Source: Pelomyxa schiedti
Taxonomy: Eukaryota; Protista; Evosea
Direction of reading: 5' to 3'
Length of the DNA: 55,097 bases
Assembly (NCBI GenBank): GCA_020536535.1
Contig: JAHLWZ010000141.1
Location: 1-55,097, forward strand
Shown one piece after another: positions 47,859 through 54,589 of the stretch (positions are counted from its first letter, which is position 1; each line of letters starts with the position of its first letter). The position numbers were made by a program, and so were the translations under genes. The notes under the pieces are model-generated. The model was not told where the DNA came from. It did no database searches and was given only the letters and a program-made list of their open reading frames with translations.

Positions 47859-49580
47859 TTAGTAGGCTGAAAGCCAGCGAATAATGTTTATCATAACAGC
47901 AGACCCCAAACAACGCAAAGGGGTGCGGGATTGGTTTTGTCCAAAGCAAGTCATTAGAACCCATACAATTTCCTTGAAAGAGGGTAGCATTATGAAATGC
48001 AACTCTGGGCTCCACATCACTCTCATTACCGCCGTGATACATCTATCAGAGCATGCAAGGTGTTCTATCTGATTGGTTTTTTTTTTTTTTTGATTCAAGT
48101 TATGAAAGAGAGGGAGACTGGACATACCGTGGCATCGGGAATAGGTGGTAATACTATCCTGGTTGAATTGTCTCTCCAAAGTACTATTTGGTTTGAGGTG
48201 GAAGCAACAGCCTGTGTTCTGCTGCAGGCAATATGTGTAAATGGTGGTGTAATTCCGTCAGTTGCATCAGCTGGAAGCCGGTCAATTTTAGCTGGTAGGA
48301 TTGGAGACCCAGTTCTGCCTAGCATATCACCACCCCAGGAGTAAACGTCGCCATCCAGAGACAGTGCAAATGCAGTTCGTACTGAAAAAATAGAGTTTCA
48401 CAGAGTCCTTTGGTTAGGGAATGAATTAATACAGGCTCATACCCGATTGAGCAATGTCAACTACATGCACATCATTCAAGGTTGTTATTGGTACAGGATT
48501 TTCTGCCCATGACATGTTGAACTGTGTGTAGGAGTGCTTGCCAAGCCCAAGCCTTTCTTTGGGTTTGTAATATTTCGATAGGTAAGATTCACCTATATGA
48601 AAAGTCTCTTCCTTGTACAAAAGCTTTCCCTGTTCGTGGATTCCAAAAGAATGTATACGTGTACGCTCCTCCAGGGCCCATATCAGAATAGGAACTGACC
48701 TGAATAAAGTAAGATACAATAAAGAAACCTCTTCTCAAGTAGCACCTTGGACACTCCAGCGGAAATCAAATCAGGGGGCACTGCCTTGCTGTGCCCCACG
48801 GTATTTGTGCAACACATAAATAGTTTTGAACCACCTCTTGTAAGTGGGTTAAAGTTTTTCAGGTTGATTAGTGTACTTGTGCAGTGCAGTCATGTAGTGG
48901 TCCCCGGAACTAATGGATAAAACCGGCGAATTTACGCAGCCATGGGTGGAGACAATATCCAGAGAATGAACTACGTGGATATTATCCTCTTCTCTCCTTC
49001 TACCTGCCAGATAGAACTTGGGGGATTTAGGCTGAGCTATTACAGCCATAAATTGATCAGTTGCTGTCATTGTAATCACAGGTTGCGCTGTAGGTAGCAC
49101 AATTTCACTGGAAGCAAGCAACCCCTATTATTTTGGTATGTTTAGTGCTGTTATCTCCCATCCTCTGTTCTAATTCTAATTTGGTTTTAATAGAAATTCC
49201 ATGCAAACCTCCTCTTCAGCTCTACTCTGCAGTTGCATTGTATATTGGTCGCGCACAGTCGAAAGGGGCATAGGCTCGGCCGGTGCTGGCCAGACAACAA
49301 TCCTGCCACATCCCGATTGTGGGATGCGGTCGCCGCCGTCGTGGGCATCGCCATCCCCTCGTGTCCCATAATTCTCTTCGCCTAGATCCAACAAGGCCGC
49401 CGCCCAACCGTCGTGCGTGCAGCACAGCCGCGACACGCGAGGCCAAGACATAAACGCCGTAGGTGGAGGATTCCCACAATTGAGGCGCCGCTGCGCCCCC
49501 ACCACGCACGCCACCCCGCGGAATCCCCAGTGCCTGAGGGTCGAAGGGTCTGAGGAACCGCCTCCAGTGGGTGCTCCCAT
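47859..49580 (-). CDS. Divergent RCC1-like beta-propeller protein, multi-exon; 3' end approximate
   Basis: Segments VLSISSGDHYMTAL, RLGLG...PVPITTLNDVHVVDIAQS, FALSLDGDVYSWGG...LGR, FTHIACS. ATG at 49580. Confidence 0.65.
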
Positions 49581-49742
49581 AATGTCGTCCACTTCCACAG
49601 TCCCAGTGCCTGTCGGTGCACGTGCAGCCTGTGCAGCCAGTGCGCAATCAACAACGACAACGCAACGCACCATTGAACAACAAAAAAACCCAAAGAAAAA
49701 TTGTTTGTTTCGCTGGAGTGTCGGTTGAAGGGACGTTACGAA

Positions 49743-52700
49743 ATGGGTGATCACTTTAACATGATGATGCTGGGAGACTCTGGGGTTGGGAAAACATGTG
49801 CAATTCTGCGGTAAAGTCTATGTGATTTTGTGTGTTCATTTAAATTGGTTGCGCTAACTGGGAAAAAGATTGTGCCCTCCAAGTGAGAACTACATTCCCG
49901 ACATATGGGAACCTGTACATTTTTTTTTTTTTGTTTTTTTTTGTTTTGTTTTTCCCCCTTTTTTTTTTTTTTATCCTGCCACTAAACAGCCTGTATTTTC
50001 ATTTTTTTATTCTCTACTTTGAAGCCTGGGAAGAGCACTGTTGTTGATGGCAAAGTGTGCTACTTGGAATTGCGGGAAGGGTGAGTTTGTTCCACATACT
50101 GCCTTTTCTCAATGATGCCCAATTTCCAATCCATACAGGTGTGGCTGTGAGGATTATGATAGACTGAGACCTCTAGAGTATATTTTTTTCTTTTTTTTTT
50201 TCTTGTACAACTTAGTGAAGGAATGGCAGGTATCCAGTAATTGACATATTTTGTTTATGCTTCTCTATACAGTGCCGCCCTTCATTTGTCAATGCAACCA
50301 CCAAATGGATACGAGAGATCCGGAAGTTTTGTCCACAGGTAACCATTTCAACGTTTTTAAATACATTAACGTCTTTGATATAAGATTCCCGTCATTCTAG
50401 TTGGAATGAAATCCGATCTGATTGGAGTTATTTCTTCCCAAGAGCAGGTGCTTTATACCATCGGTTTTAGACGCTAATTTCTTACAGACAAATGAACGTG
50501 GTTGGGGCCCACAAGTAAAATTTGAAGAAGGCATTCTTGAAGCTAAGAAAATGCAGGCATATGGTTACATTCAGTGCAGGTGAGCAACAAAAGAGTTTAT
50601 TCAATTGTCTGAATACTTTTACAGTGCAATTACACAAAGTGGACTTGAGCTCCTTGCCAATGAAGCAGTGAGAGTCTGTCGCTTTCCAGTCGAGACTGCA
50701 TCATGGCTCGGTTTTTCTTGGTTATCAAGGACTAACACAGGAGAAACCCAGCAAGAGCTTTCAACAGATCGGACAAGGAAAACTGTCAATACAGATCTTT
50801 CTGTTTGGACAAATCTTGAGCCCAGCATACCGCGGTTGTAGACTTATCATCACATTTTCTCTATTTTAGCTCATATCATCCATTTTGAAACCAGATTTGG
50901 CCATGCTGCTGTGGTAATTGGTCCTATAATGTTCATTCCAGTTTTTACTATTTGAGACATTGATTCCATAAAGGTACATCTTGGGTGGAAGCAATTTTTA
51001 CCACTTGACACAAAACTGTGAGGTTGTGTGGCCTTCTTTTTTGGAGGTACTACTGGCTGATTCACCTGCTCAAAAAAGGTCCTGCGGTTCGATACAGTAG
51101 CAGAGAAATGGCTTCCCTCTATGCCATTGCCAGTTGATTTCTGTGGTACAGTGTTTCCATGTGCAATTGCGCACCTGGGTTCTTTCTTTGCATTTGGTAC
51201 CAATCTCTTATTGGCCTTTAATAACTCTGATGTCTTCTTTTTAGGTGGGAGAAGTTCAAGATATTCCAATCAACTTCTTGTTGGAACACCAGATAGGGTG
51301 GAGTTAGTTTTCTTGCAACCCATAGTGGCCTCTTACATTACATCCTCATATCCAGGCCATATTTGCATATTAAGTTCATCAGCTGTGGGTCGTCTCCCCC
51401 ACCGAGATTTGGTGCTTCAACTGTATCCTATGGAAAAAATATGGTTATATTCGGAGGATTTGACTCTGTTACCAGCGTGCCTTGTAATGATATTTTCTCT
51501 CTTTCTTTTTCAGACTTTTCTTGGAAAACTTTGGTATGCTGCTTTTATTGACATTAGATGTCATGCCCAAATTTTCTTTAGGAACACACTGACCCTTTTC
51601 CTGCACCAAGATACCATCACACTTCTGTATTATTCAAATCCACAATGATAATGTGGTTCTGCTGTGTCGGGTTGAATCAAGACTAAGCATTCCCTCTTTT
51701 TTTTTTTTTTTTATTCAGATATGGCGGACTTGGAGAAACGGGATGGCTTGGTGACCTATGGGTAATTGATCTTGACAAAATGGTCCAAAGTACCATTATG
51801 ATAAATTCCTAAATCTAAAAAAAAAAGTCTTGCGTACCACTACTCACAAGTGGAAATGCCCCACCACCTATGAGAGGACATGCTGCATGTGTCGCTCAAG
51901 GATCCATGTTCATCTTTGGGTTTGACATCCCCCCATTTTTTTGCAGTGGGGAAAAGGAGAAAGAATTATGTTTAACGTAGAAATACAGCTGTGCACAGAA
52001 TAGCTCTGTTGGGAAACTTTTCCGGCTAGCTTTGCACCAGTATGTGTTTCTTTTTTAGAGGAGAGTTCTGAAGAGATTAGATATGTGTGGACAGAAATTT
52101 CTGTTGGGGGCACTCCAATTGGACGAGACTTTCATTCTATGGTGTGCCTCAAAGATCGATTCTTGATTATGTAAGCCACACTTTCTTGGCTATTTCATCG
52201 GACCTATCCTAGATTTGGGGGTCAAATGAGAACCTCCAGAGCAGAAGACGTCCTTGGCGATTGCTGTTCCCTGGATATTGGACCAGGGACACTCGTTTTT
52301 GATGTTCTTCCTGAGGAAATATGGAAAGGTATCACGAAGTACTTGACTTTCATAAAGCCCAAGCTTTTCCTTTCTTGAAGACATTCTACACTACTTGACA
52401 TTTGCGGAGTTAATTCGAGTTTCGCGTACCTGCCGAACACTTCATAGAATTGCTAAAAGTGAGCCGTTGTGGACCAACGCGTACAATGGAGATTGGGGGA
52501 TACCTTCTGTTGATGGAGCACGAATATTTTGGAAGAACTCTACATTTATCAATGGGAAGAAGCCGCCACCAGTAGAGTCCAAGGCCGGTTTTCTTGTATG
52601 TTTTATCCCCTGGAAACATCCTAATGAAAGCAACAACTGTTGTAATTCAGAACTTTCTCAAATTTGGGAATCCTGCTGAACAGTCTGTATGCTTCGGGCC

Positions 52701-53230
52701 ACAATGCACAGTGAAAATGTGGGATGGGTCGCGCAAGAAAATGAAGAACCTTCTTGTTGGAGATGCAGTAGAAACAGGGGACAGGTGCAGAGCCCAAGTG
52801 ATATGCATTTGGAGGTCAGGGGCAGATTGTTATTTAATTAAAAAACAAACTCACTATTCCCAGGAATGTGGTATCTGGACCCACTGGTATAATCACACGC
52901 AGATTTGACAGTAACGATACATTGGAAATAACTCCGGACCACCCGATCCTCCACAATTCCAAATGGGTTCTGCCATCGGCTCTCAACATTCCCACCTGCA
53001 ACCGCGACATTCCATTCCTCTATAACATTGTTGTCAAACCAGAATCCGAGGCCACTCTCACAGCAACAGCCACAACAGTAATGGCAGGTGGGATTATTTG
53101 CAGTACTCTGGGTACACCGGTTCCTGAACCACTCTTTGATCCGTTTTGGAGTTCCAATCAAGTAATTGAATGGTTACATTTGCGTCCAGACTTCCCAAAT
53201 GTTGTCACTACCCCCGCACCTTTCTTGTGA
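49743..53230 (+). CDS. Multidomain protein: atypical Rho-like GTPase - Kelch repeats - F-box - Hint (Vint-type) domain
   Basis: GTPase: GDSGVGKT, YIPD, EDYDRLRPL|YP, KWIREIRKFCP, LVGMKSDL, C|SA. Intron 50835-50894 joins WTNLEPSIPR|FGHAAVVIGPI|MYILGG (Kelch). Further blades PPPRFGAS..IFGG, PAPRYHHT..YGG, PPPMRGHA, PIGRDFHS..FGG. F-box FDVLPEEIWK|DILHYLTFAELIRVSRTCRTLHRIAKSEPLW. Hint: CFGPQCTVKMWDGSRKKMKNLLVGDAV...LEITPDHPI...LYNIVV...GGIICSTLG. Confidence 0.8.
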
Positions 53231-53289
53231 TTGAGAGGAAAGAATGACCCACCATACAAGATACTACAACAATTTTTCCTTTTTTTTTT

Positions 53290-54589
53290 CTATGCTTTAC
53301 CAGACCAAACTGGCACAACATTTTCCATCATAAACTCAGCAACTCCGGGAGGCAGTGATTGATTCAATAACTCCAGGTTGCCTTCCCTTGCGGCATTTCT
53401 CACAGCAGTTGAGCTGATGTCCTGCAAGTCACCTGGTATGAGTGTGATGCCGTTGTTCTTTTGCACAGGCAGGCAGTGGTGGAAGCTGCTTTTAAGAATG
53501 TTCTCCAGCTCTTGTGTGTGACTTGGGCGGCCTAAAACGACCCAGCTGCAATGCGGCCGTGCCCACGCAGAGCACCTCAGCACAACATCAGCGCCATGCA
53601 TTTCTCTCACAGTTATATTCTGGCCTGCGTAGCATACATACATTGATAAGGATAAGAGGGCCATTACGATAGGAAAAAAGGAAAAAAGGGAAGGGGGAAG
53701 GAATAGAATAATATACCAGGAAAATCACGAGCGAGTTGCTTTTCTATGAGGTCTCTGGTTTTTCCTCCACTGGCATAACCCCAAGGGCATACATCAATCC
53801 AGGTGGACTGGGAGGCAGCGATTCTGACTGGAATTGGCGACGAAAACAATTCAGAGGGGAGGGAGGTGGGAAGTACTGGCACATCGAATTTCGGGCAGGA
53901 AGGTTGATGAAATCATTGCCCAGTTTGGAGGCAACATACTGATCTGAAGATGGACAAAGAAATCCCCCAACAACCTGTGCATAATTTGGGATGTATCATG
54001 GAAAAAAACAAAGTGGGAGGGAAGGAAAAAAAAGAAAGAGATTTTATATTTCAAAGACAGAGGAACCTTTGTCATACTATCACTGGATTCTATGAAATCC
54101 TTAGCCCGTGCAAACATTTCCAGGTGCATCCTATGTACTACACAAGAATAAAATGGGGTTTACAAAAAAAGGAAAAAGAAAAATACAAGTTCAAAGAAAT
54201 AGAGAGGAGAAAAACATCCACAAGTAACAGCCACAGCCACAGCCACAGCCACAGCAACACAAACCTGGAGCAAATGAGCCTGAGCTCATCAGCACCACAA
54301 GCCGCCACCTTGTCCCTTTGCCCTTGCCCCCGCCCCTGCTCGTGCCGCCACTACCGCACGACGACGACGTGGTGCTGCTGCTGGTGGTGGTGGAGGAGGA
54401 GGACGAAGTGGTGGTGGCGGTGGGGGGAGCGGGAGGGGGGCGCGGGGCCAGGAGGGCGGAGAGGGCAGAGGACAGCTTGGTGGTGGGCACGGGGTGGGCG
54501 CCGGGGTTGGCCTCCGTGTTGTGTGACCGGAATCCCCTGCCGCCGCCGCTGCTGCTGCCGCCTACGTAGCGTGGGGGTGCTGCTGCCAT
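53290..54589 (-). CDS. NMNAT: NMN/NaMN adenylyltransferase-like nucleotidyltransferase with low-complexity N-terminal extension
   Basis: RLVVLMSSGSFAP|VHRMHLEMFARAKDFIE (GSFxP-x-HxxH); STWIDVCPW; GAD; DISSTAVR (ISST motif). ATG at 54589. Confidence 0.82.
54229..54255. repeat. (AGCCAC)n hexamer microsatellite within an NMNAT intron
   Basis: agccacagccacagccacagccacagc downstream of the minus-strand GTTTGT donor. Confidence 0.8.

Follow-up and report, generated by a model that had tools for sequence, protein, structure and literature searches.

F-boxes bind Skp1, Kelch propellers bind targets, and Hint domains with an N-terminal cysteine (Cys1) and a TxxH motif convert the peptide bond in front of them into a thioester. 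In Hedgehog/Hog proteins, such a domain lies at the C-terminus, and the N-terminal part is predicted to be released through the thioester. The BIL domains of the Tetrahymena BUBL loci, Hint-type domains tied to the ubiquitin system, flank ubiquitin-like domains without the need for an E3 adaptor. RhoBTB carries an atypical Rho domain, lacking a CaaX motif and containing non-canonical GTPase residues, at the N-terminus of a cullin-RING adaptor with tandem BTB domains (Cul3), and the F-box/Kelch proteins (plant FBK and animal FBXO42) pair an F-box with a Kelch propeller of six blades, which is likely to bind the substrate. Vint was defined in proteins with the order VWA-Vwaint-Vint as the third eukaryotic Hint lineage, in which only Hint motifs A and B are conserved, and the U-box present in some of these proteins was an earlier link between Vint and an E3 ligase module (Burglin 2008, PMC2362128). 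Here, we analyzed a 55,097-nucleotide (nt) stretch of the genome of Pelomyxa schiedti, an anaerobic amoeba of the Archamoebae (contig JAHLWZ010000141.1, positions 1 to 55,097; hereafter the window), and found that positions 49743-53230 of its plus strand form one gene, whose product, designated P0001, has the domain order Rho-type GTPase, Kelch propeller, F-box, and Vint (Pfam search with the full protein; all four above cutoff).

Like the VWA-Vint proteins (PF14623; PMC2362128; 8R2C), P0001 has a true Vint domain by sequence and predicted fold, with the motif A cysteine and the motif B TxxH, at the C-terminus of a cytosolic multidomain protein, and the U-box of some VWA-Vint proteins provides a comparable link to E3 ligases. 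Unlike them, it contains neither VWA nor Vwaint according to Pfam, which found both on the control proteins P0013 and P0032, and its Vint belongs to a clade of its own. With RhoBTB it shares the N-terminal, atypical Rho domain, but it has an F-box (Cul1/Skp1 type) instead of the BTB domains, for which Pfam gave no match, a Kelch propeller between the GTPase and the adaptor module, and a Hint domain thereafter. It differs from the F-box/Kelch proteins in the extra N-terminal GTPase and C-terminal Vint and in the reversed order of the shared domains; the position of the F-box (527-570 in Pfam) C-terminal to the propeller (227-508), described in the initial annotation of this DNA, was thus borne out. 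With Hedgehog/Hog, P0001 shares a C-terminal Hint module with an N-terminal cysteine and TxxH, predicted to set the N-terminal part free. In sequence, the likeness is weak (profile E value of about 1e-6); no signal peptide was noted in P0001, and the position of Asp46 is occupied by Arg/Lys. BIL domains (6TMM and 6Y75) were the second-best structural matches to its Vint, with a template modelling (TM) score of only about 0.48, and P0001 has no ubiquitin-like domain. By these comparisons, P0001 belongs to the Vint and F-box domain families and is neither a VWA-Vint protein nor a RhoBTB nor a Hog protein. By analogy, it would work like a Cul1-side counterpart of RhoBTB with an added autoprocessing module. 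A closer RhoBTB-like relative than P0001 is P0082, a Rho-Kelch-BTB protein described below.

The gene consists of 22 exons and 21 introns, all introns being GT..AG and 40-110 nt long. Its coding sequence (CDS) of 2352 nt runs from the ATG at 49743 to the stop codon at 53228-53230 and encodes 783 amino acid residues (aa). The exon model was built by hand from the three-frame translation and then adjusted to RNA contigs. The complete CDS is as follows.

49743-49810, 49869-49914, 50025-50080, 50139-50177, 50230-50338, 50385-50447, 50488-50579, and 50625-50834, plus strand: exons 1-8
50895-50930, 50974-51022, 51079-51196, 51245-51302, 51356-51533, 51582-51652, 51719-51782, and 51828-51919, plus strand: exons 9-16
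51989-52039, 52081-52170, 52213-52328, 52381-52595, 52651-52814, and 52864-53230, plus strand: exons 17-22

The 783-aa model is identical, residue for residue, to KAH3766495.1, which is labeled in GenBank only as "rac gtpase [Pelomyxa schiedti]" and was retrieved by an exhaustive HMMER search with the last exon as the query. The open reading frame (ORF) and the four Pfam domains confirm the single gene and the order GTPase-Kelch-F-box-Hint proposed in the initial annotation. When exons were submitted to Pfam separately, only Ras matches below threshold were obtained, and the whole protein gave all the domains. Several candidate joins were rejected during model building: the early joins of exons 9-11 (donors GTG/gtaatt and ATT G/gtccta, with an FFFGGTTG exon) were replaced by the RNA-derived cuts 50931-50973 and 51023-51078; a micro-exon inside 51947-51970 was ruled out by the lack of an acceptor in a compatible phase; and a 21-nt intron at 52041-52061 was ruled out in favor of 52040-52080, which fits an RNA contig with one mismatch. 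A tblastn search found no second copy of the family within the window.

Contigs of two single-cell RNA runs (X1 and X2) and of two DNA-like runs (X3 and X4) were compared with the window over 49000-53900. The X3 and X4 contigs were collinear with it. In the RNA contigs, spliced joints were found at 50081-50138, 50339-50384, 50448-50487, 50835-50894, 51023-51078, 51197-51244, 52171-52212, 52596-52650, and 52815-52863. A loose contig end (GTCCTATAAT) before 50974 indicates that the intron at 50931-50973 was removed, and that of X2 contig 8 (GGACAGAAA), after 52047 and with a single mismatch, fits the canonical cut 52040-52080. Removal was thus seen for 11 of the 21 introns (nine joints and two loose ends), including all three inter-domain junctions. 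Ten introns are without RNA support, and RNA coverage is zero over 49656-49983 and 51378-51846. The junctions most relevant to the fusion are listed below.

50835-50894, plus strand, 60 nt, GT..AG: intron 8, at the junction of the GTPase tail and Kelch; spliced in X2 contig 6, unspliced in X1 contig 3
52171-52212, plus strand, 42 nt: intron 18, from the last Kelch blade toward the F-box (FLII/FGG); spliced in X1 contig 4
52596-52650, plus strand, 55 nt: intron 20, at the junction of the F-box exon and the Vint exon; spliced in X1 contig 5, with a short side of 110 nt
51920-52080, plus strand: previously unresolved stretch, comprising intron 16 (51920-51988), exon 17 (51989-52039, 51 nt), and intron 17 (52040-52080)

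The first three had been read from the sequence in the initial annotation, and each is spliced in RNA contigs. The fourth (about 51920-52060), which had been left open there, turned out to contain two introns around a 51-nt exon, the second with RNA support. For the first of them, intron 16, the peptide FIFGCAQNS across it is conserved in the paralogs P0004, P0077, and P0078. The peptide read over introns 16 and 17, MFIFG-CAQNSSVGKLFRLALHQ-YVWTEISVGG, is the fifth Kelch blade, and its counterpart in P0078 (MFVFGCAQNSTVGKLFCLDL) matches it closely.

Exon 8 (50625-50834) is a single open exon. On its GTPase side it covers G5 and the final helix (CS-AITQSGLELLANEAVRV); after a linker it continues into the opening strand of the propeller, where the Kelch motif starts (SVWTNLEPSIPR). 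The exon is splicing-independent evidence for the GTPase-Kelch fusion. The motif PR/[FY]GH across intron 8 is conserved in P0004, P0035, and P0077. At the donor of this intron (CG/GTTGTAG), an in-frame stop codon (50839-50841) follows directly, and the unspliced product would be a 230-aa GTPase without CaaX ending in ...PSIPRL.

RNA contigs also retain introns 8 and 9 (50835-50894 and 50931-50973, X1 contig 3), 12 (51303-51355), 16 (51920-51988), and 19 (52329-52380). We read these as pre-mRNA or carried-over DNA because the same libraries contain spliced forms; regulated intron retention may be an alternative source. Intron 19 is retained in X1 contig 4, in which the preceding intron is spliced, and its retention leads to a stop codon inside the F-box. 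The start of this intron resembles a decayed copy of the first codons of exon 20 (read-through G-ITKYLTF versus D-ILHYLTF). Long T-rich tracts within introns 2, 4, and 14 (49911-49978, 50174-50210, and 51687-51722) break the public contigs of all four runs.

The protein encoded by the spliced gene was divided into the following parts on the basis of Pfam matches, alignments, and an AlphaFold2 (AF2) model, whose confidence is given as the predicted local distance difference test (pLDDT).

49761-50688, plus strand: Rho/Rac-derived GTPase, aa 7-179 (Pfam Ras at aa 7-174, 79 bits; alignment with Rac1)
50689-50799, plus strand: low-confidence linker between the GTPase and the propeller, aa 180-216, in exon 8 (AF2 pLDDT 23-25 over 181-210; no Pfam match)
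50800-52246, plus strand: six-bladed Kelch beta-propeller, aa 217-508, exons 8-19 (Pfam, repeat spacing, and AF2)
52301-52484, plus strand: F-box, aa 527-570, interrupted by intron 19 (Pfam)
52485-52689, plus strand: post-F-box linker, aa 571-620, its start conserved in the family as EPLW..A.NG.W..P....WKN..F (alignments A1 and A2)
52687-53227, plus strand: Vint domain, aa 620-783, exons 21-22 (Pfam Vint at 620-748, 53 bits, cutoff 27)
52690-52692, plus strand: codon of Cys621, predicted nucleophile of Hint motif A (predicted scissile bond between Val620 and Cys621)
52931-52942, plus strand: Hint motif B, T685-P-D-H688 (ITPDHP), with T, H, and P invariant in 26 of 26 Vint sequences

The initial annotation had described the C-terminal domain as a Hint domain; a Hint domain is present, specifically one of the Vint type and not of the hedgehog/Hog type. 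A profile of 26 Vint regions matched the solved Vint structure from Tetrahymena thermophila (PDB 8R2C) with an E value of 4.6e-27, compared with about 4e-6 for hedgehog. Prediction of residues 606-783 by AF2 with the Vint alignment gave a pLDDT of 91.5 and a predicted TM score (pTM) of 0.87, and a Foldseek search with this model returned 8R2C first (E value of 3e-10, TM scores of 0.76/0.80, root-mean-square deviation of 2.5 Å), followed by the BIL2 domain of the Tetrahymena BUBL1 locus, inteins, and hedgehog. The Pfam Hint (Hog) profile scored 21.5 bits on P0001, under its cutoff of 29.7, and matched the first 40 residues only. Cys621, in the sequence VCFGP, aligns with the Cys1 nucleophile of the hedgehog autoprocessing domain, and 13 of the 14 family members share CFGP. 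In P0001, no region for sterol recognition of the hedgehog type was detected. In the 26-sequence alignment, conservation among distant Vint proteins extends over the last 40 residues.

The F-box is recognized by two Pfam profiles (F-box-like, 43.7 bits with a cutoff of 24.3; F-box, 35.8 bits with a cutoff of 20.5), its closest solved counterpart is that of Skp2 (1FS1, E value of 1e-4), and AF2 predicts three helices at 531-560. The propeller gave 165 bits with Kelch_KLHDC2_KLHL20_DRC7 over residues 227-508, in addition to Kelch_1/3/4 matches. It contains six repeats with a period of about 52 aa, with the GG doublets of the Kelch motif at 244, 296, 348, 400, and 499 and FG at about 450, and AF2 predicts four-strand blades with strands over 220-518 (pLDDT 70-90). 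The model places disorder at residues 180-215 and 572-619. Over 572-619, pLDDT is below 50 and the chain is disordered toward the predicted cleavage site, so the Vint domain would sit on a flexible tether.

For the GTPase, Rac1/2/3, RhoG, and RhoA fill the top 50 of the nearest solved structures (E value of 5e-38), with residues 7-179 aligned nearly without gaps. The length of the Rho insert is kept (residues 107-179 versus 108-179 of Rac1, with a single 1-residue gap), its sequence has diverged, and the AF2 confidence is low over 117-132. Compared with Rac1, P0001 has G12S, A13G, T35D, W56R, D57E, T58G, A59C, and Q61C; in the switch motifs, YIPTVFDN is replaced by YIPDIWEP and WDTAGQE by REGCGCE, with Gly60 alone kept, and TKLD and CSAL are replaced by MKSD and CSAI. 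The P-loop GDSGVGKT, which conforms to GxxxxGK[ST], is present. Since the P-loop Lys/Thr, the guanine-specifying Asp, and the SA motif are kept, nucleotide binding is possible. Judged from the alignment, the residues for a GTP-dependent switch and for hydrolysis are lost in P0001. The canonical GDGxVGKT, Thr35, and DTAGQE are kept in P0035 and P0077, and P0004 is intermediate; among the paralogs compared, G12S, T35D, and DTAGQ to EGCGC are confined to P0001, which is the most degenerate copy of its group. As for the GTPase-fold sensor proposed in the initial annotation, P0001 lacks Thr35 and the DxxGQ residues, so a GTP-sensor role is doubtful for this protein; it may hold for the family. The lack of CaaX was confirmed: the chain continues from the GTPase into the propeller, and its last residues are ...TTPAPFL.

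The combination recurs in P. schiedti. The family members and relatives found there are listed below.

P0001, P0004, P0035, and P0077: Rho-Kelch-F-box-Vint (Pfam), at least four genes
P0005, P0009, P0010, P0018, P0024, P0030, P0003, and P0052: GTPase-F-box-Vint without Kelch, at least eight genes
P0037: F-box-Vint
P0008 and P0012: Vint behind an unrelated head
P0080, P0084, P0085, and P0089: Rho-Kelch-F-box without Vint, with a different F-box subfamily

Overall identity among the paralogs is 30-50%. An RNA contig of P0035 (L001, run SRR23919877) covers residues 252-800 with 100% identity in one frame, running from Kelch through F-box and Vint to the stop codon, and P0078, a Trinity transcript from another data set, encodes Kelch-F-box-Vint. 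Members of the family have so far come from P. schiedti and, in the case of P0078, from this one other transcript. The head of the proteins without Kelch is equidistant from Ras and Rac and has no Rho insert. Maximum-likelihood analysis grouped the family's Vint domains, including that of P0078, in one clade (support 95/91), separate from those of haptophytes, cryptophytes, Rhizamoeba, and environmental sequences. The simplest history would be that of a single F-box-linker-Vint cassette that acquired different heads later; these heads are Rho plus Kelch, a Ras-like GTPase alone, or other sequence. P0082, an 863-aa EukProt transcript, combines a near-canonical Rac domain with a Kelch propeller and BTB and is the Cul3-type counterpart of the Pelomyxa Rho-Kelch-F-box proteins.

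The proteins without Vint (P0080, P0084, P0085, and P0089) end about 43 residues past the F-box, near the predicted cut of the Vint-bearing ones. Their F-box and tail (LPHELWMNIFSFCDPK...GDWIFVP) hardly differ from one member to another, and additional Kelch repeats occur in P0085. In P0008 and P0012, a Vint of the same clade follows an N-terminal region of about 300 residues that has no Pfam match. P0003 and P0053 lie on one 40,561-nt P. schiedti contig, as a Ras-F-box protein without Vint (362 aa) and an N-truncated Ras-F-box-Vint protein (402 aa, CFGP missing), and may be tandem copies or mis-split gene models.

Outside the family clade, the exhaustive last-exon search found Vint only after other N-termini (VWA-Vwaint, discoidin, and Pfam-blank regions). 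Since this query comprised the last exon only and word-index homolog searches were insensitive, missing known family members, the absence of the family outside Pelomyxa is provisional. A search of the Atlas returned only stand-alone Vint and Hint clusters, all with scores below 0.75. The stand-alone Vint clusters, of about 175 aa, are attributed to giant viruses (Nucleocytoviricota). In the P0019 cluster, which consists of environmental sequences, Vint lies behind a discoidin (F5/8 type C) domain.

Taken as a whole, these data show the architecture of P0001, the transcription and splicing of its single gene, the recurrence of the combination, and intact catalytic motifs. They are best explained, with a probability that we regard as better than even, if P0001 is a Skp1-Cul1-F-box (SCF)-type adaptor with single-turnover Vint self-processing. 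We infer the SCF adaptor function and the self-cleavage between Val620 and Cys621 by analogy. The F-box would dock the protein onto Skp1-Cul1, and the propeller together with the GTPase-fold domain would form the target-binding or regulatory end. The GTPase of P0001 is probably no longer a cycling switch, since Thr35 and the catalytic Gln are lost; it would be at most a locked nucleotide binder. The Vint domain would catalyze an N-to-S acyl shift at Val620-Cys621, and the thioester would be resolved by water or another nucleophile. This would split the protein into a Vint fragment of 163 residues and a GTPase-Kelch-F-box product of 620 residues, the latter with a tail of about 50 residues and possibly an adduct at its C-terminus. 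The adaptor would thus mature in a single-turnover step. In favor of this reading, the Vint-less Rho-Kelch-F-box paralogs end near the predicted cut, and the U-box of some VWA-Vint proteins had already linked Vint to E3 ligase modules. Since the position of Asp46 is Arg/Lys in the family, a second step of the hedgehog/cholesterol type is not expected. A 2024 paper accompanying the solved Vint structure reportedly deals with ligand-regulated Vint cleavage.

Several observations weigh against this proposal, and the alternatives that they favor were considered. At the level of the gene, the GTPase-Kelch joint at 50835-50894 is thinly covered, by one contig with a short side of 28 nt, neither X1 nor X2 contains a single RNA contig over the entire gene, and every retained intron (8 and 9, 12, 16, and 19) would truncate the protein. 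AF2 folds the four modules in its model of the whole protein, with only moderate confidence (pLDDT 67.6, pTM 0.44). The initial annotation had held that transcripts ending after the GTPase would point to separate genes, and both forms are found in the RNA: X1 contig 3 retains intron 8 and X2 contig 6 has it spliced. The four-domain ORF could accordingly result from misprediction or represent a minor isoform, with separate or truncated proteins, such as the 230-aa stand-alone GTPase arising through retention of intron 8, as the main products. On the other hand, the 11 introns are spliced in the same libraries that contain the unspliced forms, exon 8 itself joins the GTPase and Kelch, the junction motif is conserved in four paralogs, one cDNA contig of a paralog extends without a break from Kelch to the stop codon, and Rho-Kelch occurs on a single transcript elsewhere too (P0082), which leaves this explanation highly improbable. 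Equally slight is the chance that P0001 is encoded by a paralog decaying toward a pseudogene. The GTPase substitutions confined to P0001 would fit such decay, but the 22 exons form an intact ORF and are joined at canonical splice sites, the gene is transcribed and spliced, all three coding differences between the runs (52731, 52737, and 53068) are synonymous, and the Kelch, F-box, and Vint motifs are intact.

At the level of function, the F-box has a pLDDT of 55-60, no paper showing Vint autoprocessing was found in the literature search, and the residue at position -1 is Val; beta-branched residues slow N-terminal cleavage in inteins. The Arg/Lys in place of the hedgehog Asp46 is a further such point. 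The gene and its four domains may thus be real and the Vint non-cleaving, in which case it would mediate binding or dimerisation, or sense a ligand, within a full-length F-box adaptor, with which the conservation of the last 40 residues among distant Vint proteins is also compatible. We consider this unlikely: Cys621 and T..H are kept in essentially every paralog at 30-50% identity, as expected for catalysis, and the linker before Cys621 is predicted to be disordered, as is usual for a cleavage site. It is quite unlikely, in our estimation, that Vint transfers the thioester-activated C-terminus of the GTPase-Kelch-F-box fragment to a specific nucleophile, either a membrane lipid, replacing the CaaX anchor, or a protein amine, giving a self-conjugating E3 adaptor. 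No CaaX was found at the C-terminus of the Vint-less Rho-Kelch-F-box paralogs, which end in ...GDWIFVP, and the idea of a lipid-anchor substitution was not borne out by them. If such transfer did occur, Hint chemistry would serve this expanded family of an amoeba as a new means of placing cullin-RING adaptors in the cell or of coupling them covalently. A role of the F-box-Vint cassette with its GTPase heads as a conflict or immunity module is very unlikely. The heads would be bait or decoys for GTPase-targeting factors of endosymbionts, prey, or viruses, and binding would lead to ubiquitination or Vint release. The family is expanded and fast-diverging in one lineage, its heads range from canonical (P0035 and P0077) to degenerate (P0001) and were swapped before a monophyletic cassette, and stand-alone Vint clusters are common in giant viruses; this support is circumstantial only. 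Self-processing of an SCF-type adaptor remains the explanation that we prefer.

Next to the gene, the divergent upstream neighbor on the minus strand (49000-49556) is transcribed, and its 84-nt intron at 49124-49207 (CT..AC on the plus strand) is spliced in X1. The X1 contig of this neighbor has 3 nt fewer than the window at 49331 and 1 nt fewer at 49502. A short simple repeat at about 54160-54300, reading HSHSHS on one strand and VAVAVAV on the other, lies in a GC-richer region downstream of the neighboring minus-strand gene.

Searches of the literature on Vint together with F-box, on Vint autoprocessing, on 8R2C, and on the four-domain combination returned only Burglin 2008, in which this architecture is not described, and neither the P. 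schiedti nor the Mastigamoeba balamuthi genome paper refers to the family. The earlier statement that the four-domain order was undescribed therefore holds in that no paper describing it was found, but the protein is not unique: it was already deposited as "rac gtpase" and belongs to a P. schiedti multigene family. Annotation-based surveys cannot pick up the family, since its deposits are named only "rac gtpase" or "hypothetical protein." The domain combination is genuine, recurrent, and undescribed in the literature searched; its function is something that we infer throughout, and lineage-specific domain shuffling, which is common in amoebae, tempers its significance. Of the three Hint lineages in eukaryotes, Vint is the one least understood, and in the literature it is known only behind VWA. 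Its occurrence behind an F-box in at least a dozen paralogs of one amoeba, with GTPase heads that lack a lipid-anchor signal, provides a testable setting for Vint chemistry and points to a previously unreported coupling of autoprocessing with SCF-type ubiquitin ligase adaptors. It also extends the RhoBTB idea of an atypical Rho domain joined to a cullin adaptor to the Cul1 branch. Together, the Rho-Kelch-F-box proteins and their Rho-Kelch-BTB relatives make this a recurring theme.

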